DNA from: Asterias rubens
Taxonomy: Eukaryota
Length of the DNA: 64,000 bases
Assembly (NCBI RefSeq): GCF_902459465.1
Contig: NC_047082.1
Coordinates: 868,001 to 932,000, forward strand
Reading direction: 5' to 3'
The number at the start of each line of letters is the position of its first letter. Positions within the stretch are counted from its first letter, which is position 1. Below the pieces are notes generated by a model. That model was given only the letters and a program-made list of their open reading frames with translations, searched no databases and was not told where the DNA came from. The translations under genes and the position numbers were made by a program. Shown here piece by piece: positions 29,912 through 60,837 of this stretch.

Positions 29912-40548
<10,637 letters not shown>

Positions 40549-41021: not shown

Positions 41022-44000
41022 ATGTCGAACAGTGCAGGAACACTCCAGACGACACACCAGGCGACTTATATTCCGCCTAGGATGATGCCAGGGTAAGTTT
41101 TATATATATGGTTTTATTTATTATTTGTTTACCATATTATTACCCAAAAACAAAAATAAGGTTGGTTAAAAACACTTACATTCAAAAAGTAAGTAAACTT
41201 TTACAAGAACAAAATAAATAGGATTGAGCATGATTTGAGGCATTGCGTGGTGAGGTATCGATATATATTTGTTTTGCGGTAACACCATCTTGCCAGGTAC
41301 AGTTTGTTCTTAGAGAACTGTCTTGCTTAATTCCACTACCGCGGAGTAGATTGTTCGTGTGTTCGGGAGACTTCTCAATTCTGAAAAAGAACTGTAAATA
41401 TTATTATTAACTTACACGCACGAAATAGTACCAATAAAATAATGTTTAAAAAGTTAAATTTGGTCGAAGGACCGAGTTGACTTGGGACCGAGTTGACCTG
41501 GGACCGAGATGACTTGGGACCGAGTTGACCTGGGACCGAGATGACTTGGGACCGAGATGACTTGGGACCGAGTTGACTTGGGACAGAGTTGACTTGGGAC
41601 CGAGTTGACTTGGGACCGAATTGACTGGGACCGAGTTGACTTGGGACCGAGTTGACCGGTACCCTTACTTTTACCCCTTTAACCCCCGCCCCTCCCTAAA
41701 AAAGATAGTAATTTAAATGTTTTGGTATCAAACTGACTACTGAGTCAGGTAGGCAAATAATTTTAGTAAGCCTATCTTTCTCCAAGAGTCCTTGACCATG
41801 GTAAACTGAATAAGTCTCTATTTTTTAAGGCCATACATTGTGCCAATGATTACCATCCTTCACCATGTTCATTTCTTTGACTGAGGCCGAGGGGAACGAT
41901 CTGGGTCCGTTGAGGTTCACCTGACCGGCTTTGCAGGGGGGGGGGGGGGGGGGGGGAATGGCATGGCAATTTGAGGGATTCATGACTTTTATGTTTATCA
42001 GCTTCAGTTAAATAATCTGAAGAAAGAAGAAAAGAAAACATTATCTGGTTGGCAACCAAAAGCCTACTCCTTATTTTTATACAGTAGTGGCAAGTGAGAT
42101 GACAGCAGAATGAACCTCATTATACATTGTAGCTGTGGATTTCCCTTCCAAAAATAGGCCCTGGGATATGAAGTTTACAGTAAATATTACAAGTAAACTT
42201 GAAGGTGCAACCATTTTAATAGTGGCAAGTGAGACGAAAGCAAAATGAACCTCGTAGTCTATATAGGTGCATCTCCATTCAGAACCCTTGTTTTTTTCTT
42301 TCAAAACATATATTTTTTTTATTTTGTCCGCATAGGTATAAAGGCCATTGCCCGACAGCAAAGTTTGACTACGGTGAAACTTATGGTAATGCTACCGCGA
42401 AATACTTCCAGGACTACAGATCGGAAACACTTAATCAGAGCAAGAGTAGCTACGCCAAAGGAGGACAGTTCCCGACAGTCTACACCCACAACCCTGACCT
42501 TGTCATTCATGCCAGAGACAGGTCAAGAGAACAGTGGAGAACAGCGCCTAAATATGAGCTGACGAATGTTAATCATGACCGTAGAGAAGAAATCAACAAA
42601 TTTGATACAGTGAGCCTTTTTTTGTAATATTTTGTTATTTAAGAAGCTGTATGCAGACCAATTATTAAATGACATCTTAAAGATGAGTAACCTTTGTTTC
42701 ATGAAGAAAACCTAAACATGGTAGAGTGTGCATGCCAACAAGTGGCTTGTTGTGGCCAAGTGGTGAGAATACCGGAATCAAGCTCTGGTATTTCTCATCA
42801 GCAAAGTGCGGGTTCGAGTCCTGGGCGTGACACTTGTCTTAAGCAAGACACTTAACTATTATTGCTGCGTCCTTTGGATGGGATGTAAAGCTGTACGTCT
42901 TGTCTTGTGTAATGCGTGCAGAAGAAGAACTCAAGTGATCTTAGTAAAGAGAACAGGTTCGCCTCGGTATTTATTCGTGCTTGTATTGGCTAGCCTATTG
43001 CACCAAAGCACCTTGTAAACTTTCACATGGTGCTATGAAAAGAAACATGTATCATAATTCAAAAGCAAACGTAGTTCTGTAAAAGATCGTTGATGAAACA
43101 ATTTATATGAACTGCTGCAGCAATGGCGTTCTACTTGGCTTGAAAGCTGTTTGCTAAACACTTGTGTCATATCTGTAGCAAGTTGTTTTCCTTCTTTCAC
43201 ACGTCTATGTACCAGTAAGTTGAAAAGAGAATTTTCTGGTAAGTTGAAAAAAGAATTTTATATTTTGAACTTCATTTCAAATTTCTAATCCACAGCTTGC
43301 CCAAGGTCACCGCCAATTTTATAAGGATCGGACAGGAACTGTGCCACGTGTGGATGATTTTCTGATCCCAAAGAGTGCCGAGGATATGTACAGACAAGAT
43401 ATCAAATCGTAAGTACACCAAGTGCCTGTTTGAGGTGTGGAACTGATCTGCTTCCTTTCTGTGGTGTGTTGAATTTCTTCACTTGAGCTTGTTGTGTGGA
43501 TTGAAATATTAATATGCACATTTGATATTGGTGTGGGATAACTCGACCTGGTGCTGGGTGTGGTACTAATAAAACAATTCTACTGCCAAGAAATAGTGTC
43601 AACTACAGACTTTAAAATCTGTGGATCTGAGGATCTGTACACTTTGATTGGATTGACCATTAAACGAGTACGACATGCTGAATTGGACACGTTTTATACA
43701 GACATGTTTATCAACATTGAGATGTTACCAGCACCCAAATAGATGAGTACTAATACAACAATGCTACTGCCAAATAGTGTGATCTACGTGTACAGGGGAT
43801 TAATTTTAACATCTGCGTGAGGATCAGTACACTTTGATCAGATTGACCATTGGACTGGAGTACAAAGCTGAACTGGACATTTGTTATGAATACAGACATG
43901 TTTATAAACATAATATGATACTAGCATCCAACAGAACTACATCTGTGCTGCAGTCCATGTGTAAATGAAAATAAAGCATACAGTTCTAGATACTGTCACA

Positions 44001-48015: not shown

Positions 48016-51000
48016 CTATTCATAAATTGTGTTATCCACCCATCCGTCTTCCCCGTTTGTATCAATTTCTAATGAGAGTGGAAGCTCATCAGTGCTCGTA
48101 CTCCCATACAAACTATTGTCAACCCATTCAGTATCTGATTGCCCGTTTGGTTCTTCGTACTGTTTACCATCATACGCTGATGACACAGACACGTAATCGG
48201 GTATCGATTTCACGTCATCAGGTTCCGTGTTAACGTCACCAGGTGTCGTGTACACGTCATCTGGTGTCGTGTTTACGTCATCGTACACGTCATCGTATAC
48301 GTCATCTATACTTGGCTTTTGAAGAACGACTTCGGAGTATGTTTGAATATCCGGCGAGTCTTTAGCATTTTCATATATATTGTTTTTGAAAGTTGACTCC
48401 GTCTTGTCATTGGCAACTGCTGTAGATTTCTTGTCCATGGTGTTTCCTCTGCATATAAAATTGGAGACCAGAAATGTTGCGTTAGTCATTGATATGGTCC
48501 TACTGCTCATCTTTTGGAGATAACTTTTGTAAAGCATGTAAAGCTGATTTGGTTGACTTCGATATAGAAAAGCAGAATACTTGTCTAGTGGCTTTATTAC
48601 CCCAAATATACAGGTACATGTGCTTCTTAAAGTGGTTTCAAGGTTGAATTACTTGATGGAAAGATTACCTTTTCCTCTTCCAGAAAAATATGAGCATTAG
48701 GAGCAAGGCTATTGTGACGCTGAGCACAACCGCAACTGTTATTCCCGCGATCTGCCCTGGAAGACATAATTAGTGAATAATATAAAAAGGACAGATATAT
48801 TAAAAGTCTCGTGTTTTTTTTTGTTTTTTTTTTGGGGGGGCACAATATTTTACATTTACTTAACAAATTCAGATGGCCAACACCCGTCTATGACGTGCAG
48901 CGCATTAGGATGGACCAATGAGTGACCTTCCTTTGTCCTCTAGATGAGAGCGCCAAGTCTTTAGACATCACGGTGTGGGCTACTTGATTTTGCTCAATTC
49001 CAACTCATTGTAAACAAACTGGATGAGGTTGGACGAAATAATAATCTGGTGCCATGTTTGCGCAATGCATGTTAGCATTCATTACTGTTATGGAAACAGG
49101 AAACATGACCAAGATGGTGACAGCGTGATAAAGGTATATTGGCAGCATAACTCTATGGGTGCATTCGATTAGCTTCCCATGGTCGACCCCGATGTGGCGT
49201 ATTTTATTTTTATCCAGGACGAACGGTGGCACACAATTACCCCTCGTTCGTCGTGGAAAAGTCGCATACTTTGTTTTTTTTTTAGTACGAACGTGTGCAG
49301 ATGTTTACCCACGCCCCACCTGAAAAAAACCCCAGACGCATCATCACGTGAGCCTTCTCGTCGTGACTTCAGTGTACCTCGAGTCAGCCCCAAGTGACCC
49401 TATCCACAAGCGGGGCTCCTGGGGCTGGCCCGAGGTGCACTGACGTCACCACGGGAATGCTCATGTGATGACATGTCTGGGTTTTTTTTCCAGGTTCAAG
49501 GACGAACGTGGGGTAATTGTGTGCCCACGTTCGTCCTAGAAAAAAAAACCGCCACATCGGGGTAGACCCAGGGAAGCTAATCGAATGCACCCTTTGATTG
49601 GCAGTTGTTTTAATACCTAAATTTCCAGTTGATGGGAGTTGTAATGCAGTTGTTGCTTTGACTGTAGTGACCTCCATTGTCGGTGAAGTTTCACCACGTG
49701 TTATGCCATCAGTGTCGTGGCTGGTGGTAGCCTCTTCCGTGATCTCGGGAATACTTGATGTCACTACAGTTGTCATTGTCGTTGTCATTGTCGTTGTCAT
49801 TGTGGGTGCACTTGTCATTGTCGTCATTTCCATTGTAGTGACGGGCAGAGGCGTTGTCGTACCAGAAGTGGTTGTTTGAGCTGAACAAGACAAAATAGAA
49901 AGTGAAACCGATAGTGTGATTTTTCCCACTACCGCTTTAAGAGTTCCATAATGTATTTTGCTTTGTATACGACGATGTTCTGTAAACTGGGTTTATTATA
50001 ATGACTAACTGATACTTAGTGGCAAATTTGACCGTTGGCGTTGCCAATTTAATCATTGCATTGTTTTATAGCAATGAAAATTGATCACCTTATCGTTTTA
50101 AATCGTGGAGGTTTATGCCAGCATGTAAAGACGATGACCTATGTTTACATTCAAACCGTCTCTGTTGACAAAACACTGTATACGTCATGTTTCGCCGGGC
50201 AAAAAGACGCGTAGTCATGGTAAGATTGCATACACTTTCTAGCTGGTTGCCTAAACACAAAGGTTTTGCCCGGAGGTATGCACGCGAATCATGTTATGGT
50301 TTTCAAGTGACGTCAGAGGTCACATCGTCTATAGCAATGGAGGACGCAAGTTCAATGCAAACAAGGTTTCGATACTGATTACAAAGTTTACAAGTGTCCA
50401 GTGCTGATAAATATTTCCGTCTGAACTGATATATAATCCATGTAAAGGCACTGGATACGTTATGGTTATTGTCAAAGACCAGTATTCTCACTTGTTGTAC
50501 CCCAACATGCATAAAACAAAAACAACTGCGAAAATTTTGCCTCAATTCGAATTTGCAACAACACAATGAAAGAGAACAAAAAACACTTTGTTGCATTACT
50601 TTGTGTGCTTTAATTCATAAGCCTAAAAGGGCTTCATGGCTATAATTTGAATGAGAACCTACCTCTTTCTCAAAAACTACATTTACTTCAGAGGGAGCCG
50701 TTTCTCAATGTGTTATACTATCAACAGCTCTCCATTACTCATTGCCAAGTAAGTTTTCTAATGCTTACAAGTATTTTGAGTAATTACCAATAGTGTTCAG
50801 TGCCTTTAAAACCAGAAAGCGAAACTGGAAAGATGTTTCCGTTTCTAGGGGCTAAAATATTGACAATGTTGATATAGAAATAGTGTAACTCATTGTTCAA
50901 TAAATCATACCTTCACATGTTGGTACATCGTCACTCCACGTGGCAATATTGTCTACATTCCCACATGTTATATTTGCTGCACCTTGTAGACGAAACCCGG

Positions 51001-52192
51001 TGTCACAGTAGAAGTGGACAGTTGTCCCGAAGAACTTGTAGTTATTCAAGTTATAAGACAATTCCCATGGATTTGTGATTGATTGGTTTCCGTTTGCAGG
51101 GTCAACTGTATTAGTGCAGACTCCTTTTCTAACTATTTGAAAGATTTAATAGATTAAAATTAACATCTTTAATCGGTGATAAAGAATATTAATTTTGGTT
51201 TTACTTATTTAACACTGTATACTATACTTTCCCAGGCATATTACTCGGGTGGGATTCGAACCCACGACCCATTTGTAATTCTAGAGCAGTGTCAAACAAA
51301 CTAGACCACTGAGATTGCCCTGTATTTGAAAGATGCAGAAAATAATTGATGGTTCTAACAAAAATGACACGGGTCAACGTGAGGCAGAATACAGTGCATG
51401 TTTCTTTTGTTTGTTTTAACACTTCCCGGGTCATTCTAACCCGGGAACTGGGTCAGGTCCAACTTAATAGCCTTAATTTCACAGCCAACTTACTTTCATA
51501 GATAGATATCCGTTCGGAGTCTCCGCACAACTGGTCTTTATTTCCCGTACAAGGATCTTCACATTCTCCAGGCCTTTCACCATGTCTGCCATAATCATCA
51601 TTACTTCCACAGAAACATTCATATTCAAATTCCAGACCGGCGTATTTGTCTTTACGGATACCTTGCTGCCAATCCAGACATTGTTTGAAACATCTTTCCA
51701 CGGACTGTTTATCATATGAGTCGAAAGGGCCATAATTTAGCGCACGATTCCATACTACGTCTCTAAAACATTCCAGAAAGCCAGGGCCTATATGAAACAA
51801 ATCAAACAAACAAACAAACATAAAACAAATGAAAACAATATATTTGAATGGAGGGAGATGTTGAAAGTGTTAATAAATTGAGAAAATAATACATGTATAT
51901 ACGTTAAGTGAGTTATTGTCCCGTTGTATTGCGACAACTAATTACAAAATTAACTTGTTTTATTAGGCCTTCTGTCTGCGAATCGGAGGTGCTCCTCCTC
52001 TCATTCCATATAATTCATTTTTAGTGGACACTCTCCCAGACAAAATTCATTAAAATTTGTTATAGTGTGATTGGGTGTAGATGATGAATGACCGAAGACA
52101 TAAACTCACCGTTTTGGGCCATCGATAACACAAGTTGGAAAGATAGAACCAACACCAATACCTTTACATACAGAGAAACAAAAGATCCCATC
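48016..52192 (-). CDS. Type-I membrane receptor B (paralog of A); 6 exons, ~460 aa if a 1-nt frameshift in exon 1 is corrected
   Basis: Exons (-): 52192-52110 (leader, 83 nt instead of the 82 needed), 51787-51494 (WSC), 51132-50911 (CCP), 49880-49617 (Thr-rich), 48756-48669 (TM GQIAGITVAVVLSVTIALLLMLIFFWKRKR), 48448-48016 (tail ending WVDNTIYE). Same exon order and phases as receptor A. Confidence 0.83.
49157..49592. mobile_element. Near-palindromic TIR MITE; related copy at ~6494-6735
   Basis: GGGTGCATTCGATTAGCTTCCC..GGTCGACCCCGATGTGGCG ... CGCCACATCGGGGTAGACCCAGGGAAGCTAATCGAATGCACCC; the 6494 copy has the same TIR. Confidence 0.8.
50442..50809. mobile_element. Same MITE family as 31126-31512 (in an intron of receptor B)
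   Basis: AAAGGCACTGG...TTGTCAAAGACCAG ... GTAATTACCAATAGTGTTCAGTGCCT|TTAA. Confidence 0.8.
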
Positions 52193-54025
52193 GTCCTTTT
52201 TTTAAAGATGAGCCGCCAGTTGAGAAGAAAATGAGACGAGTCTTTATTCGATGTGCTGTCACATTATACAAAAAACAACATCTGTTCAAGCATGTGCATC
52301 ACTGCATCAGAGGGCTTTATATTGTGCACCATCATATTTTTTAATTTTATTTTGTTGGCTGCTACCGCAGTACACTTCTAGACAAAAAATGGTCTGATAT
52401 GATATTTAAGGCTACATTTTGTTTCCGGGTTCAACAGTTGTTTACATAAAATATTGCTTGGTGAATCTTATCTCGCCTTACATAACATATTCCAAGATAT
52501 GCTTTGTGAAGCCATCTGAGCGTTTCTCGTGTTTTCACACGAGAAACGTCATTAAAGGCTTCACCATACCAACAGCGTCGTCGTGGTAAAGTTGAAAGTC
52601 CAAGGGTAATGATAACCAACAGTCCCATGATTCCTTATGGAACAAAACAAACGCATGTGATGGATGAAATTTGTGGTAGCTAAAGCCCTAAGTTTGTATC
52701 AATATAACATTGTGTGTGACACTTGCACACTAACCTGAGCCCAATTTCAAAGAGCTGCGAAAAGTAACCTTAGCAAAAACAAAACTGCTTACCAGAATAA
52801 GGCTACCAGCCAAACTACCATGTTACATGTAAAAATTTGTGACTGGTATCATGCTAAATTCTGCTAAGCAGAATTGATTCAAGCAATTATTTAAGCAGGT
52901 CTATGAAATTTGGCCCGGGCATTATAGACAAGAATCAGTTTAAACACATTTTCATTTGAAAGTTGTTCCCTAATAATAATACAAACTTTGTTGTCAATTA
53001 AGTTAATATGTTAGTAAAAGCATGAGCTTTATTTTCGTATGAAGCGTTTTCTTTGCACAATTACGTTGACACAAAGTGTAGAGTACATACAAATAATAAC
53101 AACGTGTTACTTGTGTAAAATAACCAACTTGTTCTTTACAATAAAACTCGAAGAAAAAAACCCAGATCAACTTCACTGTCGTGTAGTGGCTTATGCAATT
53201 TGTTTAAAGCAATATTATGCAAACAAAAATCAAATCATATAAACATGTTGTGATTATACAATGGGCTTTTTATATAGCGCCATTCCATTATAGACCTCAT
53301 TATAATTCGATAATGAAGCAGAAATTAAGCAGTAATACCAATTCAAAACAACTAGCATTTTCTTGAAGACATAGTTTGAAATTCAGATAAAATTTGGCAG
53401 GCGTTCTTTCAGTTCCAATAGCTTTAACATTGCAATGCTGTTGTACAATGTATACACGGTGGCGGGTAAAATAATTTATCAGTTCAACTCTTTGTTAAAT
53501 CTCCCCCCCCCCCAACCCCAATCCCTTATAATGTAGACTTTTTTATTTTAAGTACAACTGATTTGTTGTATAATGTACCCTTTTTTAAGAAGGTGACTGA
53601 CAATTAAATGTACCCAAACACTAATTTTGTATTTCCAAATCGAAGTTTGCCAAATTGAAGTACAAACGCATGAAGTGTTATAATCTATTTCAACCTTAAC
53701 ACCGACTAAGCACTGTATACTCAGTGCTTGAAAAGTGTGTGTGTGATTGTCAAACCTTTCAGTAATTAAATACAATATTTTATGGTTACATGTTTCACTC
53801 TCGGTTTCACTCTAATTGACTTTATTTACAAAGGATATGATGATTACAGATGTTGAACTCTCTGAACGCATCCGACAGAAGAATTGAGGTAAGCTTGCAG
53901 ATACAATTGTTACAACAACAATATTGATTCAAACTGAAGCCCGCATAGACTCAAGGGTAAACAAATATGATTTTGTTCAAACATAATTATTTCTCTCTTA
54001 CTTTGTTAGGTCGAACGAACAAAAC

Positions 54026-54398
54026 CTAACAGACCCACACTAGTGTAATAACAGGCACGCCATTGCCTTGTACTCTAAAGCATTCACTGTCCTTATTGTT
54101 CATTGTTGGTGTCGATGTCGTCGTTGTCAATGTCGTTGTCGGTGTCTCTGTCGCTGTTGTTGTCGCTGTTGATGTTGTTGCTGTCGATGTTGTTGCTGTC
54201 GATGTTGTTGCTGTCGATGTCGTTGTCGCAGTCGATGTTGTCGCTGTCGATGTTGTTACTGCCGATGTTGTTGCTGTCGATGTTGTGGTTGCTGTCGTTT
54301 TCATTGTCGATGTCGTTGTCGATTGCATTGTCGCTGTTGTTGTCGTTGTCGATGTAAGTGTCAATGTTTTTGTTGTTCTTGTTTTGGAATTATGGTAA
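54026..54398 (-). other. Orphan Thr-rich (TTSTA)n reading frame / 15-bp GTC-GTT-rich tandem repeat between receptors A and B
   Basis: The ORF track gives a ~112-aa almost pure Thr/Ser/Ala frame on the same strand as the receptors; no convincing splice acceptor found. Confidence 0.4.
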
Positions 54399-54512
54399 AC
54401 TCATTTGCCGACTCGTCTATAGATCAATCCCAGCTTTTAGTGAAATTTACCGCAGGATTTAAATCCAATGCCCATAATATTTTGATATACATAGCTATAT
54501 AAGTATTGCATA

Positions 54513-57500
54513 TTATTCGTAAATAATATTTTCAACCCATCCTGGCTGTTCTTCCATGGTTGTTAAGGCCCCAACATGCTCGTCGTTTAGATCATTGTTC
54601 CTCATCTCTGACTCGTCTTTCAATGCTGAACTATCATACAGGATATTGTCAACCAATCCGGTTTCATTTTCGTCTTCATTTGAAGAAGGCTGGATATCTA
54701 AGTTAACTTCATACGCCGACTCCGCTGCTAAATTAGTGACGTCATCGGGATTCGCGTACACGTTTTCGTTTTTAGTCCGGTTCTTGATAACTTGACTGTA
54801 TACTGGTATAGTTGAGGCTTGGTTTGGTTCTGTGCTGACGACGTCAGAGTCTCTTTGGGTCTGGTTGATGGTGGATGTAACTTCAGCCATTGCCACGTCA
54901 GAGCTTGCGTTTCTCTTGTTGTCTCTGACAGATAAACAAAAATGCACACAGTTATAACTGCGTTTTACAGGTTCATGTTGGAGCACTTCTAGCCCCGTAT
55001 ATACGTGGCAGGTGGCATAATAGGGAAGTTTCGCACGCGAACGGATACGTATACGCATACGTTTACTCCGTAACCTACTTACGTGTAGCAAGCAGGATAT
55101 CAGTGTCGTCTACACGTATAGCAGATAGCGAGTAGCGTATGACATCATAATGATAACGTATCTGACGCACTAACCGTATCCGTTCGCATGCGAAACCTCC
55201 CTAATTTGAAGTTGCTCAACACCATTAGTTGAAAGTAATTAGAATTGCCTATATTTGACATCTCTTTCACCAAAAGGAAATACAGTGCATTGAGCCATCG
55301 TTGAAACTCCCAAATTACCCATACTAAAGCTTTCGAAGGTTACGGGTTGAGATAATGGATGGTTTCGATTTAAAAACGAAACGAAGTGTTTTACCTGGTG
55401 TCCCTGTTAATATTTAGGAGCATTGGTTGATATGTCATGACATTTAACTTGCTATATGACAATGTCAAACACACGGAAATAACCACTCATATAGGAAGTT
55501 ATTCGCTTCCTTTAACCCTTTCGAGGAAGTGTACCAATCACCCTTTATGTTTTTTTTTAATTGTGTTAATAAATTGGATTATTGATGTAGACCTACATTG
55601 TTTAAATACATGAACGTATTCATTTATGTATATTGAAGATTTTCTAACAATACAAGTAAAACAAATTTGAAATTAGAATTAGTTGTTGTAAACTGCTAAC
55701 CAGCCAAAAGGATGGTATAAATACAAAACTAGTTAGTGGTGAGACGTTTCGAACCTGGCAGAATCATGGCCTTTTCGAAACGACGGCTTCGTCTTTGGAT
55801 TCGGCTAGCTCAGGCTTGCTTAGCCCGCAGGTTGTTCTGAAGTGCGTACGCGCCCAGGGCTTCAGACGAGAGAACGGAGCCTCAAACCGAAGCCGTAGTT
55901 TCGAAAAGGGCCTATCTTGAAGGCCTAAACCAAGATATGGTTACATGTTACGTTTCCTCAGATATTGAGTGTTCTATTTACCTCCTTCGGAAAAGAATTA
56001 TGACAACTACCGGAAGAATAACCAAAGCTGAGATCACTCCAACACTTGTTCCTATAATAGTCCCTGTGGGATAGTATAGAAGAAAAAACATTCAAACGTA
56101 CCGATGCAACTCTTTGGAATCCCAAATCAACACTTTCCTAAATTCATTTCTTTCTTTCGAAATTGTTTATTTTATTTTATTTTGAAAGATATAGACATCG
56201 TTGTTATTTTGTTTTGCTTCTCCTTAAACTTGCCATTGAGTAAATTCATTCCCATCCTCAGGATTTTAATGAAAATGAACGGTATTCTTGTTCTATTAGA
56301 TGTTAAATTTGCATCGTGGATAAAGAATATTAATTTTGGTTTTCCTCATATAGACACCAATGCGTGTTAGCACTGTAATAGGCCTACTCAGAACTTTGCC
56401 GAGTTCTGTGAATTTTTTTCTTTTTACTCGGGTATGATTCCAACCAACGACCTTTGCGATTCTATAGAGGGGTTGTACAGTAAAAAAATAAATAATAATG
56501 GTCCAGTAATAATGTATTCTAAAAAATGAGATATCAAGAGAGGGCCTGGAAACACGGTTTGTGGACTAAATGTATGTCAGTGATTTGATGAAAGAACATT
56601 GATATTTGTTTGAAGCTTTGCATGGTCTGGATAAATTGGAAGCAACTATAAATAAATAGTAAACTTGCGGGTACAACCATATGAAATATCGTTAGTAGGC
56701 CTAAGAGTGTTGACTTTGAAAAGATACGGTGTGGTCTCGACGTTTCGAACAGATCTCTGCTCATCTTCAGGAGAAATCAGGACTACTGGGCCCAAGTTCA
56801 TAGAGATGCCTAAGCAAAATATTTTGCTAAAACCATTTTCTGCTCAGCAAAAATGAGCAGGATACGAATCACAAACTTTACATGCGATATATAAGTTTGG
56901 CTGGTAACCATATTCTGGTAAGCAACATTTTATTGTGCTTAGCTACTTGTTGTGCTTAAGCAGCTCTATGAAATTGGGCCATGGTGGTGATTGAACATTG
57001 TTATGATGATATTTACAACGATTGCTCGGTAGATTTCTCTGCAACATTGGAACAGCTGTGGTATGTGGAATTTAGTAAACGTATACCTGTTTTGGATGCT
57101 TGTGGGTTATTGGGTATCTCTCGCCCATCAGTGGTGTCACCAGGGTTACTCGATGGCCCTCCCGACGAGGCGGTCACTACCATGTTGTTAGTCTGGTTCG
57201 TAGTCGTGGGCACTACACTTGTAACTGTGTGTGAAACAGTTGTCATTGCCATGGGTGTGTTATTAGTCTGGGTCGTTGTCGGGGGCGATGCTGTGTATGA
57301 AAAAGTTGTCGGTGGTACAACTATAATATGGAAAAGGACGGATACTTAATGTCACTCATTTATATTAATAGGATTTGATTGTTTTTGTTTTCAAGCCCTA
57401 TACTTCACGGATCCAACAAATGTGATTGACTCCATGCCCCCTGGTCATTGCATGCCTTGTGCCCTTGAAATGCTCCAGTAAAAAATTACAATTTCATCAA

Positions 57501-59127
57501 TAGGGTGCCCTTTATACCAATGGAAAAAATGCCTTGGTGCCCCTGCCCTTTCAAAAACCAATGACACAGGCCCGTGTTTTACTATTAGCGATTAAGTACA
57601 CCCCATTGAATTTCCTAACATCCATACTGTAAGTCTTTGGTTTTGTAAACCACACTGAAAGTAGTCGTAGTGAAGTTAAGAGTAATGTAAGTGACAGTTT
57701 CATGCTATTTTGAACTTTACCTGCTGTACATGTTGGTACAGAGTTGCTCCATTCTGCAGTGTTACCACTCCGTGTGCATTCGATAGAATCTTCACCTTGA
57801 ATAACGTGTCCAGGGTCACACTCGAAGCGTACACAGGTACCAAAGAACTTGTAGTTTGCTAAACTATAAGAGACGTGGGTAGGATTTGTGACTTCATGGC
57901 TCCCGTGGGCTGGTGGGCCAATTACATTATTGCAAACTCCTTGGGAAACTGAAATTCAAACACACATGATGTTGTCCTAGTAATACCGGTTATTCTGATT
58001 AAACATGCTTGTGTCGCTGCAGCAATCATTATTTTGTACATTCACTTTTGCTTTTTAAAATCAGCCTAAATCATTCAAACAAGCATTTAAATGGACTTCA
58101 TACAAAACAGACAATATTTTAAAAGTGTTGTGTGATCTACAATACACTTGCAATGATTATGCATTAGATGTCCCATTTCCCTTTAACTTCTCCTGGGTTG
58201 GTACTTGAATTTGTCAGCGCTCAATCGGCCCGGGCAGAATTAACAAAGTAAAACACCTTTGCTGTATAGTTGAGTTTTTAACTCAAGAACTTTCAACGAG
58301 CAGTTTCCTCTTGCATCCAATTCAACCAGCTATCCGATTATAAGTAAGTGGAACTTACTTTGGTAGATCGCTATTCGCCAAGTATCACCGCAGTATTGGT
58401 TGGAGTTGCCTGGACAAATATTCCGGCACTCTGAATCTGCTGCTGTCCCACGTCTTCCATAATCCTCGTTGTTTCCGCAGTAACATTCACGCGTATATTC
58501 GACACCAGCATATTTATTTGATCTACTGCCACAGTAATTGAAACACCACTCCACGGACAAGCTGTCGGAGGTTGTTGAATCCCCTCTCAAATTCCGACCA
58601 CCATTCAATAACCTACCATCTTCAAAGCACCCCAAATATCCGGGACCTATAAAACGACACAAAACGTAGATAACCACAAATTGTTGTGCAATATTATCGC
58701 AATGATCCAAAAGAGATTATTTCACATAGGAGATAAACGTACTACATTTCAATCATGCTATTGAGAGTGATGGGGGAAATGCTTTATTTTTGTTGGGGAA
58801 AAAAAAATCATTATTTCGCGGTGCACTGTTTTACAGAGCACATGAGTAAGGCACGTTATTTTTGATAACACGAATACGGATTACTAGAAAAAAATATAAT
58901 AGCAGTGAGTTTATACCTTACCATAGACCACACAAGTTATCGGTTTATTTATAAATGGCACAAGTTGTGTACTGTGAAGGCAATATTATTATTTTAATAA
59001 ACACTGATTTTCAAACTGTGTATTAAAGAGAGATTTGCTTACCGGTAGCCTGCGCATTTGATGACGTCATTAGTTGATAAACCAACGCCGTCCAAATTAG
59101 TGCAGCTCCATACGATGTATGAAGCAT
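54513..59127 (-). CDS. Type-I membrane receptor A: signal peptide, WSC, Sushi/CCP, Thr-rich stalk, TM, Tyr-motif tail; 6 exons, ~442 aa
   Basis: Exons (-): 59127-59043 (MLHTSYGAALIWTALVYQLMTSSNAQAT), 58646-58359 (WSC, 8 Cys, YAGVEYTRECYCG), 57948-57721 (CCP, C..P..FFGT.V.F.C.PG...C...W....P.C), 57320-57087 (Thr/Pro-rich), 56063-55982 (TM GTIIGTSVGVISALVILPVVVIILFRR), 54924-54513 (tail). 1329 nt, open, all GT-AG. Confidence 0.87.
55023..55201. mobile_element. Short TIR MITE in the last intron of receptor A
   Basis: TA|GGGAAGTTTCGCACGCGAACGGATACG ... CCGTATCCGTTCGCATGCGAAACCTCCC|TA. Confidence 0.75.
55768..55912. mobile_element. Short TIR MITE inserted into a Penelope-like terminal motif
   Basis: GGCCTTTTCGAAACGACGGCTTCG ... 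CCGAAGCCGTAGTTTCGAAAAGGGCC. Confidence 0.75.
56735..56774 (-). ncRNA. Minimal type-I hammerhead ribozyme motif (Penelope-like element pLTR type)
   Basis: Minus strand reads UCUC-CUGAAGA-U-GAGCAG(AGAU)CUGUUC-GAAA-CGUC-GAGA: conserved core, 6-bp stem II, palindromic ACGU in place of helix III and a 4-bp stem I. Confidence 0.65.
56788..56982. mobile_element. ~190-bp MITE family (GGCCCAATTTCATAGAGCTGC TIR); other copies at ~23647-23855, ~32620-32812, ~37745-37905 and ~52738-52918
   Basis: Shared body GAGCAGGATACCAGTCACAAATTGTACATGTGACATGGTAGTTTGGCTGGTAACC and terminal CTCTATGAAATTGGGCC in five places. Confidence 0.75.
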
Positions 59128-59279
59128 TGTTTTGGATCCAAATGCCTGAAATCAAGTTGTACAAATAACTGGCTTGAATATTTGTATCTGTGAGTTTTGT
59201 ATTGTACTGGGAGTGATTTACTTCAATCCTTGTGTCGGACTACACTTGCAAAGTTTCTATTGTATTATAAGTCATGCAA

Positions 59280-60837
59280 TTAAAGACTCTGGACACTATT
59301 GGTAATTGTCAAAGACCAGTCTTCTCACTTGGTGTTTTCTCAACATAATGCATAAAATAAAAAACCTGTGAAAATTTGAGCTCAAATTGATGGTCGTCGA
59401 AGTTGCGAGATAATATTGAAAGAAAAAACACCCTTGTCACACGAAGCTGTGTGCTTTCAGATGTTTGATTTCGTGACCTCAAAAGCTAATTCTGAGGTCT
59501 CGAAATCAAGTTCGTGAAAAATTACTTCTTTCTCGAAAACTACGTTACATCAGAGCCGTTTCTCACAATGTTTTATACTATCAGCATTTACTTCCTTGTG
59601 TCCGACCACTCTTTCCAAGTGCTCCAATAATGGCATGGCTATAGTGCCTCCATCGCCAGATTATGTCCCTAGTCGACACTATACTAAAAACCCATTATTA
59701 TTTTTCGACCAATATCCACGTCTGGGTTGTGTATACAACTCGGACACTTCTCAATGTAACAATTCCTCAAGCATTCACCCGTTATTTTCAAATCTGTTTC
59801 ACTTTTAGTTTTCCTTTCAGTCTTTTGATGTTATTTGTCATAAATAAGCTATTAGTTTGTACAAGAAATGCTTACCTTTAAAGGGTGGTTCTATATGCAC
59901 GGGATTCAAGATACAGGCCACAACCGCTACCAATCAGTAAGAGTTAGAAAAGAAGAACATGATTTCCTTCATACGGTAGGCCTACACCACTTCGTTTTAG
60001 CGAAAATATCATCCAATGCAGTCTGTGTACTTTGCAAAACCAGCTTTGTGCGTTCTTTCCAGTCAGTGATCAGAAGTACAGTCACAGTGCAATGTTCGGA
60101 AGATGTTGTTTTCATTTTAAGTTCATAGTGTATAAGGTTTAGGCTATTGCAAAACGTACAGGATATATTTTCTTTAGTTCCGCATTCCATGGTGTAAAAC
60201 CACGGTATACATAGGTTTTGAGTGGGTGACAATGAATAACAGAGCCTAAAGAGCCCTCGCTAGTTCAAATCCGTGTTTGGCATATTATTGTACACTTTGG
60301 CCTTTTTTATTTGAGTACATTAGAATGCCTGCCATGGCAAATATTATATCCTCCTTTGTAACGAGTTTAAAGGAGGATAATTAGAAATGGTGATTTTCAC
60401 GAGTTGCTTCAGCTCTTAGTTTAAGTAACGAAATAATTTGTCAAATTATTTCCGAAAATATGAAATATAAACTCTACCTCCACAAGACAGTAGCATCTTG
60501 TTCATCCAGCCATCTTATTCATTCATTCAGGTTCTTATACTGAGAGTGGATGTTTCATCAAGGGTGCTCTCGTGTTCTCATCTCATTATTTTATCCCCGA
60601 TGCAAATTTAAGATCTCTTTCTATAAATAAAAGTCAGATACTGCTCTTTCAGTTTTACATGACAAGTTTTATTTTATTGTTGTTAACATGGAACACTTTT
60701 TATCTCAAATCTACGTAAATTTGTAAGACATTTCGTTATAAACTGTTCTTTCAGCATTTCCCCATTACTCGTTACCGAGTGAGGGTTTATGATAATAATT
60801 ATGGTGAGTAATTACCAATAGTGTCCACTGCCTTTAA
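59280..60837. mobile_element. Same MITE family, split by a 1.17-kb insertion
   Basis: Left ~300 bp at 59280-59589; missing right ~80 bp at ~60760-60837 ending GTGTCCACTGCCT|TTAA; TCAGCATTT is present at both junctions. Confidence 0.8.

Follow-up and report, generated by a model that had tools for sequence, protein, structure and literature searches.

Two tandem WSC-Sushi membrane proteins of the sea star Asterias rubens belong to a kinase-linked family and carry putative phosphotyrosine-docking tails

Introduction

What kind of receptor is encoded by two neighbouring six-exon genes of the sea star Asterias rubens whose products look, at first sight, like the cell-wall sensors of yeast? The genes, referred to here as A and B, lie on the minus strand of a 64,000-nucleotide (nt) stretch (NCBI RefSeq assembly GCF_902459465.1, contig NC_047082.1, positions 868,001 to 932,000), which we call the window and whose own numbering is used throughout. 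Both proteins have the same order of parts: a signal peptide, an eight-Cys WSC domain, one Sushi domain (also called CCP), a Thr-rich stalk, a transmembrane helix, and an acidic cytoplasmic tail. An earlier note on this DNA had compared them with the yeast sensor Wsc1. The scheme of the Wsc family consists of a WSC domain (cysteine-rich domain, CRD), a Ser/Thr-rich region, a transmembrane segment, and a tail (PMC9024836).

Here we report that A and B belong to a family of type I membrane glycoproteins that is arranged in tandem and specific to sea stars, and in which other members couple this ectodomain to a tyrosine-kinase domain. Judged from sequence, the Wsc1-sensor reading should probably be replaced by that of a kinase-less member of a kinase-linked WSC-Sushi family with a predicted phosphotyrosine-type docking tail.

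Results

Gene models and domain composition

Both genes were rebuilt by reading the minus strand from 47 to 60 kb, listing the stop-free frames, and locating the exon ends by inspection and with a script. Gene A runs from 52191 to 48016 and gene B from 59127 to 54513, where 48016 is the final base of the stop codon of gene A and 59127 is the A of the ATG of gene B. Each gene has six exons (Table 1), with a coding sequence of 1383 nt (460 amino acids, aa) for A and 1329 nt (442 aa) for B, and GT-AG boundaries were found at all ten introns. The two genes also agree in phase, with 1-1 for each of the exons for WSC, Sushi, and stalk, 1-2 for the transmembrane exon, and a start in phase 2 for the tail exon. 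The rebuilt models bear out in every particular the earlier description of two six-exon paralogues with identical exon order and phases and with these end positions.

Pfam was run on the exon translations of both genes. The WSC and Sushi exons were recognized (Table 1), and the stalk and tail exons of A and B gave no Pfam match; since no kinase match was obtained in the tails, neither protein has a recognizable cytoplasmic tyrosine-kinase domain. Thr, Ser, and Pro together make up 51-53% of the stalks, each protein has one hydrophobic helix of 19 residues, and the isoelectric point of both tails is about 4.1. Pfam and composition thus agree with the domain order that had been read from the letters. 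The ectodomains of A and B are 46-50% identical to each other. No third WSC-Sushi copy was found within the 64-kb window.

Pfam detected a single CCP per protein and not the tandem CCP modules of complement-control (RCA) proteins; the PDB matches of gene B to CR1, CR2, and DAF were confined to residues ~159-211. In the Sushi domain of gene B, a fifth, unpaired Cys (FFGTCVRF) was observed at 57858-57860, where A. amurensis has Arg.

Table 1 Features of the window. E, expectation value; dS, synonymous divergence; omega, ratio of nonsynonymous divergence (dN) to dS. The orthologues are those of A. amurensis.
Feature	Positions	Strand	Remarks
Gene A exon 1	52110..52191	-	Start codon (ATG at 52191) and signal peptide, 27 codons + 1 nt; hydrophobic leader; GTGAGT donor; 94% identity to A. 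amurensis
Gene A exon 2	51494..51787	-	WSC, 8 Cys, phase 1-1; Pfam WSC E 1.1e-14; 83% nt identity to orthologue, dS 0.41
Gene A exon 3	50911..51132	-	One Sushi/CCP, 4 Cys, phase 1-1; Pfam Sushi E 7.1e-9; 97% nt identity to orthologue
Gene A exon 4	49617..49880	-	Thr-rich stalk, 33 Thr in 87 aa; 6/12/18-nt tandem repeat; phase 1-1
Gene A exon 5	48669..48756	-	Transmembrane helix and KRKR stop-transfer; phase 1-2
Gene A exon 6	48016..48448	-	Acidic tail of 143 aa, 10 Tyr, stop codon; 97% nt identity to orthologue, omega 0.25
Gene B exon 1	59043..59127	-	Start codon and signal peptide; N-terminus identical to RefSeq product P0013
Gene B exon 2	58359..58646	-	WSC, 8 Cys, phase 1-1; Pfam WSC E 3.1e-19; 88% nt identity to orthologue, dS 0.30
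Gene B exon 3	57721..57948	-	Sushi/CCP, 4 canonical Cys + 1 extra; Pfam Sushi E 1.9e-9
Gene B exon 4	57087..57320	-	Thr/Ser/Pro-rich stalk; alternative acceptor 30 nt downstream (exon start 57290)
Gene B exon 5	55982..56063	-	Transmembrane helix and RRR
Gene B exon 6	54513..54924	-	Acidic tail of 136 aa, 5 Tyr, stop codon; 99% nt identity to orthologue, dS 0
Gene B 3' untranslated region	54000..54512, extending below 54000	-	RNA contigs contiguous across the stop codon
CMI2B-like exon	42223-42624	+	E 1e-27
MORN-repeat exon	37416-37709	-	E 1.2e-10
Open frame, 500 codons	16454-17953	+	Sulfotransfer_2, E 6.7e-49; preceded by tandem PKHDQGA(T/N)xTR peptide repeats
Single open frame, 1059 codons	7076-10252	-	Sterol-sensing/Patched domain, E 1.5e-10

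Completeness and transcripts

Gene B corresponds to RefSeq LOC117304667, which is annotated as "uncharacterized protein" and whose isoform X2 is the 432-aa product P0013. P0013 was found by a library-wide HMMER search with the WSC exon of gene B, over which it is 100% identical; with this exon alone, the search was dominated by multi-WSC proteins, and the useful matches were only P0013 and P0144. The sole difference between P0013 and the 442-aa model is the acceptor of exon 4. The inner acceptor (57290) is used by RefSeq isoform X2, and the outer one (57320), which gives 442 aa, by an RNA contig of run X2 and by P0151, the A. amurensis orthologue of gene B. For gene A, an intact orthologue of 475 aa with the same six exons and splice sites was located in A. 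amurensis by synteny. Since the RefSeq and A. amurensis models span 432-475 aa, and since the 3' untranslated region directly follows the gene B stop codon in RNA contigs, the genes are complete and are not pieces of a longer gene.

RNA contigs of four runs (X2, X4, X6, and X9 included) were aligned to 54000-59999, that is, to gene B. In run X2, one contig joined 57948..57721 straight to 57320..57086, which is the exon 3/4 junction. Contig ends fell exactly at 58359 and 54924, at about 58644, and also at 57948/57721 and 57320/57087, and contigs beginning exactly at 54924 were present in X2, X6, and X9. The contigs that stopped at a boundary had unaligned overhangs of 107, 110, 30, 132, and 125 nt, which fit the adjacent exons; at 54924 these overhangs were 30-132 nt, consistent with exon 5 plus part of exon 4. 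The depth of X2 over gene B was 155-277 in exons against 0-19 in introns away from repeats. Thus, the transcript check that had been proposed for the predicted junctions was successful for gene B, directly at exon 3/4 and through contig ends at exon boundaries, and remained indirect for gene A.

An X9 contig (54191-54924) passed unbroken across the stop codon of gene B, and contigs of X2, X6, and X9 covered 54000-54200. A Thr/Ser-rich frame of 124 codons at 54029-54400 (minus strand) was considered as a mucin exon or a separate gene and rejected; because the RNA contigs continue into it from the stop codon, it belongs to the 3' untranslated region of gene B. A 12/15/63-nt tandem repeat at 54120-54355 makes up this stop-free frame.

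Very high-copy repeats were observed in the gene B introns and just upstream of the start (59200-59600, 56200-56400, 56800-57000, 57400-57600, and 55600-56000). The summed contig depth over these repeats was up to 10^5-10^6, with hundreds of repeat-derived joints.

The WSC domain resembles that of Kremen1

The best match among solved WSC domains was human Kremen1, with 68.6 bits (E 4.5e-18) for B and 44.3 bits (E 1.6e-10) for A, whereas the CRD structure of yeast Wsc1 (7PZ2) reached about 20 bits (E ~3e-3; 3.9e-3 for A). An eight-Cys N-terminal WSC domain is present, but by these scores it is not specifically related to the fungal sensor CRD. Furthermore, the WSC domain does not pass directly into a Ser/Thr-rich region, as the Sushi exon stands between WSC and stalk; stalk, transmembrane helix, and tail are present, and a layout of WSC, Ser/Thr-rich stalk, transmembrane segment, and tail matches the Wsc scheme (PMC9024836). 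The Kringle-WSC-CUB ectodomain of Kremen was not found either; only WSC and Sushi were seen in the exon translations and in the Pfam result of P0013.

Hence the likeness to Wsc1 is one of shared layout and not of membership, and is most simply explained by convergence. As for the Wsc1-type sensor of the earlier note, the layout stands, while membership and mechanosensing are not supported, in view of the Kremen-like WSC domain, the interposed Sushi domain, the lack of a cell wall, the tyrosine-motif tail, and the kinase relatives described below.

The family includes receptor tyrosine kinases

The queries used to find relatives were P0013, a family alignment of 18 rows, and the ectodomain of one Patiria match. 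The architecture of signal peptide, WSC, Sushi, stalk, and transmembrane helix was matched only in sea stars, namely A. rubens, A. amurensis, Patiria miniata, and Acanthaster planci. Remoter relatives with added domains were found in a sea urchin (SRCR-WSC-Sushi, where SRCR is the scavenger receptor Cys-rich domain), a hemichordate (SRCR-WSC-CUB-Sushi), and a crinoid (WSC with many Sushi domains). The family cassette has the phases 0-1, 1-1, 1-1, 1-1, and 1-2 in A, B, and their A. amurensis orthologues, and the same exon blocks occur in Patiria P0163.

Ten of the sea-star matches were receptor tyrosine kinases with the same WSC and Sushi ectodomain: P0163, P0179-P0182, P0165, P0171, and P0186 of P. 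miniata, and P0183 and P0185 of A. planci. They bear the automatic names Cad96Ca-, FGFR-, Ret-, or MuSK-like, and the HRDLAxRN and DFG motifs were intact in all four kinases that were read (P0163, P0165, P0171, and P0183). Their ectodomains are 40-50% identical to that of gene B. A Patiria kinase gene opens with the same exon blocks for signal peptide, WSC (99 codons), Sushi (76 codons), stalk, and transmembrane helix. In Patiria (locus L002), two WSC-Sushi kinases and one kinase-less member lie in tandem on one strand, and in Acanthaster (L003) a kinase, a CMI2B-like gene, and a kinase-less member are adjacent. In a tree of ectodomains, the Patiria kinases interleaved with the kinase-less proteins, and the Asterias A and B types formed two long, well-supported branches. 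Within Patiria, the identity between kinase and kinase-less ectodomains is 53-61% over the ectodomain query.

At the A. amurensis locus, WSC-Sushi genes of 418, 443, 465, 439, 439, and 475 aa, at least six copies, lie on one strand, and a gene like that of ciliary microtubule inner protein 2B (CMI2B) follows the 475-aa gene on the other strand. A CMI2B-like exon is also present in the window (Table 1), so that this neighbour is common to the clusters of A. rubens, A. amurensis (L001), and Acanthaster (L003). P0152 (LOC117304668), on the contig of gene B, has a near-identical ectodomain and a different Tyr-rich tail.

These results agree with the proposal that a lineage-specific family has expanded by tandem duplication, to which the same-strand copies of A. 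amurensis testify, and with that of a modular build by exon shuffling, as in other sea stars the same cassette is followed by another 3' end. Nothing relevant was returned by literature searches, whether on the family, on the names given automatically to its members, or on kinases with a WSC domain, and no paper was found that describes the family; the matches on WSC proteins of sea cucumber and Daphnia concern other proteins.

As a separate observation, the gene B orthologue is duplicated in A. amurensis (L001, 1-4203 and 10001-14850), giving the two 439-aa copies, whose tails are 95-97% identical to that of gene B. For this segment at least, the two Asterias species therefore do not have the same number of copies in the cluster.

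The cytoplasmic tails carry conserved tyrosine motifs

The tails of fourteen kinase-less members from Asterias, Patiria, and Acanthaster were aligned. Amid variable sequence, the islands NNxY, PxYS(Q/E)V, (D/E)VY(A/T)(T/N)PDD, GWV(D/E)NxxY, and a C-terminal GWV(D/E)NxIYE were conserved, and up to five Tyr motifs are kept across sea-star orders. The tail of gene A contains NNIY, TYSEV, two copies of YDDV, YTTP, WVDNSLY, and the C-terminal GWVDNTIYE, and that of gene B contains PVYSQV, NVYANPDD, AYEV, LVDNILY, and the C-terminal GWVENIIYE. Both have the motifs of tail type 1 of the kinase-less subfamily, which are PxYS(Q/E)V, VY(A/T)(T/N)P, an internal WV(D/E)NxxY, and the C-terminal GWV(D/E)NxIYE, except that the internal copy in B is LVDNILY. 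B is also without the first NNxY. The extra YDDV and TPDDV units of gene A derive from 12- and 21-nt tandem repeats. Among the outgroup tails, the hemichordate one has GFVDNIIYE and MVENVAYE, and the urchin one has IDNELYG near its end.

The tails are also the most constrained part of the genes between the two Asterias species. Omega was 0.25 in the tail of gene A, and the 136 codons of the gene B tail showed four amino-acid replacements and no synonymous difference (dN 0.012, dS 0).

By vertebrate rules, the conserved motifs would be SH2- and PTB-type docking sites. The YDxV motifs of nephrin are phosphorylated in signalling (PMC11247170), and phosphotyrosine motifs for Nck and Grb2 occur in unstructured tails (PMC9333988). 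A feature-based language-model search of the Atlas with the tail returned SCIMP, PAG, LIME1, an ITAM (immunoreceptor tyrosine-based activation motif), and poxvirus A36R at scores of 0.55-0.62, which we regard as leads only.

The WSC exon and its introns are unusually diverged

The genes of A. rubens were compared segment by segment with their A. amurensis orthologues. Outside the WSC block, the identity was 91-99% in exons 1 and 3-6, 89-98% in introns 3-5, and ~91-93% in the flanking intergenic DNA. In contrast, it was 83% (A) and 88% (B) in the WSC exon and 50-81%, with many gaps, in the introns on its two sides, so that the WSC exon and these introns are 3-4 times more diverged than the remainder of each gene. 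Likewise, dS was 0.41 (A) and 0.30 (B) in the WSC exon against 0-0.16 in the other exons (0-0.11 in Sushi, stalk, and tail). Omega of the WSC exon was 0.32-0.37, that is, not above 1. The comparison of dN/dS between ectodomain and tail that had been proposed earlier therefore showed a constrained tail and, in the WSC exon, an elevated dS. This pattern reflects a deeper history of the cassette and not merely faster protein evolution.

Two forms of the gene B WSC exon were also seen among the A. rubens-like RNA runs: X2 had only the reference form, X6 only a variant, and X9 both. The X6 variant differed by 24 changes and 8 gap letters in 283 nt, at a depth equal to that of the gene B tail in X6, and the tail exon had 0-4 changes in the same runs. 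A second form of the gene B ectodomain, divergent by ~8% in the WSC exon and ~4% in the Sushi exon, was present in X6, X9, and X4 and not in X2. The variant changes shift the protein toward residues of A. amurensis and of the neighbouring paralogue LOC117304668. The two forms may represent allelic dimorphism, cross-mapping of the paralogue, or gene conversion.

Discussion

Kremen-like WSC and single Sushi domains on a Thr-rich stalk of the O-glycosylation type are combined in A and B with a conserved tyrosine-motif tail. We presume that the two proteins are recognition receptors that would signal through recruited SH2/PTB adaptors, a reading to which we give an even chance of being right. The WSC-Sushi head would bind an extracellular ligand, either glycan or protein. 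Binding or clustering would then lead to phosphorylation of the tail tyrosines by a kinase acting in trans, either of the Src type or a WSC-Sushi receptor kinase, and the phosphorylated motifs would recruit SH2/PTB adaptors. By such phosphorylation in trans and adaptor recruitment, the kinase-less members would act as signalling receptors or co-receptors and not as wall-type mechanosensors. The WSC exon would then be the variable, ligand-facing cassette, and the tail the constrained output module. This mechanism is deduced from the tail motifs, their constraint, and the relatives of the two proteins. An immune or glycan-sensing role is plausible as a hypothesis.

Several points weigh against this proposal. 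YDxV would be a Nck-type motif, YxNP and YxxP would be Grb2/Crk-type motifs, and hydrophobic-x-N-x-x-Y would be a PTB-type motif according to vertebrate consensus patterns. Moreover, Yxx-hydrophobic and NxxY also serve as endocytic sorting signals. A structure model (AlphaFold, from the 18-row alignment) had a mean pLDDT (predicted local distance difference test) of 43.8 and a pTM (predicted template modelling score) of 0.29, too poor to speak for or against a disordered tail. Transcription of gene A is indicated indirectly, by conservation of the intact orthologue and by word shares of 0.23-0.29 in RNA-like runs labelled with the same organism as X2; these shares are near the exon share of the stretch (0.33), and one such run, X6, has spliced gene B contigs. 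Finally, the family searches returned no WSC-Sushi kinase from Asterias, and tblastn found no relic kinase exons in the window, including behind gene A, or in A. amurensis L001 and L004. A paired WSC-Sushi kinase may thus be absent from Asterias.

An endocytic or scavenger receptor is possible, although we consider it unlikely. Its head would capture microbial or self glycans or glycoproteins, and YSQV/YSEV and NxxY would be uptake signals for AP-2 and PTB adaptors, as in receptors of the LDLR or CED-1 type. Patterns of sorting signals are matched by PxYSQV and by the two (W)V(E/D)NxxY motifs, all of them conserved. Also in favour of capture, the relatives of sea urchin and hemichordate contain an SRCR domain, and the binding of beta-glucan by fungal WSC domains is cited in PMC9024836. 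However, the Pro of the classic NPxY is absent, and sorting signals do not typically resemble the two YDDV copies of gene A, the YxxP/YxNP motifs, or the strict IYE at the C-terminus. The kinase-bearing paralogues, too, point to signalling.

The divergence of the WSC block leads to two further ideas. The WSC exon with its two introns could be a long-lived polymorphic cassette under balancing selection and the cluster a variable recognition system (for pathogen, allo-, or gamete recognition), in which one hypervariable ligand-binding module is wired either to a kinase or to a tyrosine-motif tail; this is a doubtful extension, which, if true, would provide a non-immunoglobulin analogue of paired receptor families. 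That the locus is chiefly a polymorphic recognition locus, with the cassette kept diverse by balancing or diversifying selection so as to discriminate variable ligands, overlaps with the adaptor-signalling reading and appears improbable. The divergence of 12-17% in the exon and 19-50% in the introns on both sides, compared with 1-9% in the remainder of A and B, the dS values of the exon, and the differences among X2, X6, and X9 in the WSC form of gene B, set beside a nearly unchanged tail exon, speak for such a locus. On the other hand, omega of the WSC exon does not exceed 1, the second form could be LOC117304668 aligned at the 90% likeness threshold, and the observation comes from assembled contigs of only four runs.

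It is about equally improbable that the kinase-less members are decoys or modulators, which would tune kinase signalling like truncated receptor isoforms, either by taking up the ligand of the WSC-Sushi kinases or by pairing with these in inactive heterodimers. Such a role would suit the similarity and interleaving of kinase and kinase-less ectodomains in Patiria and the tandem arrangement of the genes, but a pure decoy would not need a 140-aa tail with five motifs kept across sea-star orders under purifying selection, and Asterias yielded no WSC-Sushi kinase to be modulated. A mechanosensor like Wsc1, with the glycosylated stalk as a spring, the WSC domain anchored to the extracellular matrix, and strain passed to the tail, is very improbable in spite of the shared layout and of the NCBI automatic names that follow it, because the WSC domain scores far higher with Kremen1 (44-69 bits) than with 7PZ2 (20 bits), the Sushi domain separates it from the stalk, a wall is absent from animal cells, tyrosine kinases occur among the paralogues, and the tail, itself without a Pfam match, has tyrosine motifs for a type of signalling not known from yeast.

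The family is of interest in several respects. The non-immunoglobulin surface receptors of echinoderms form large repertoires that are poorly understood. In the family described here, members of one tandem cluster join the same phase-compatible cassette either to a kinase or to a tail without one, a clear example of modular receptor evolution. The analysis corrects automatic database names of the type "yeast cell-wall sensor-like" and adds to Kremen, PKD1, and WSCD a further animal WSC domain for which a ligand could be sought. If the WSC divergence represents maintained allelic lineages, the cluster would be a candidate recognition locus relevant to sea-star immunity (wasting disease) and reproduction.

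Comparison with known systems

The fungal Wsc1-3/Slg1 proteins share with A and B an N-terminal eight-Cys WSC domain, a glycosylated stalk rich in Ser and Thr, one transmembrane segment, and a non-catalytic tail (PMC9024836). They differ in that the WSC similarity is weak, and the sea-star proteins add a Sushi domain, have unrelated tails, and belong to animal cells without a wall. Action on a wall and signalling to the Rho1/Pkc1 cell-wall-integrity pathway characterize the fungal sensors. Kremen1/2 (Kringle-WSC-CUB-transmembrane), which are co-receptors of Dickkopf, are likewise type I proteins without catalytic activity, and the WSC domain of Kremen1 takes part in protein binding (PMC5014086); the sea-star proteins lack Kringle and CUB, have a Sushi domain and a mucin-type stalk, and end in a different tail.

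Nephrin, adaptors of the PAG/LIME1/SCIMP/LAT type, and vaccinia A36 resemble A and B in their acidic, non-catalytic tails with several short Tyr motifs, and the two YDDV copies of gene A are of the YDxV kind found in nephrin (PMC11247170; PMC9333988). The sequences are not homologous, however; the adaptors are almost without an ectodomain, and that of nephrin consists of Ig and FnIII domains.

Nearer in layout than Kremen is the hemichordate protein P0177 (Glandiceps talaboti; SRCR-WSC-CUB-Sushi), which, like P0173 of the sea urchin Lytechinus pictus, has WSC, Sushi, a transmembrane helix, and a tail with hydrophobic-(D/E)-N-x-x-Y. Both carry an extra N-terminal SRCR domain, the hemichordate protein also has CUB, and the two align with the sea-star proteins over part of their length at ~29-32% identity and share none of the other tail motifs. 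The WSC-Sushi kinases of sea stars have the same five-exon cassette from signal peptide to transmembrane helix, the same tandem cluster, and the same CMI2B-like flank, and differ in having a multi-exon catalytic kinase end in place of the single-exon tyrosine-motif tail of A and B. Taken together, the architecture of A and B is a new combination of known modules and not a new kind of system.

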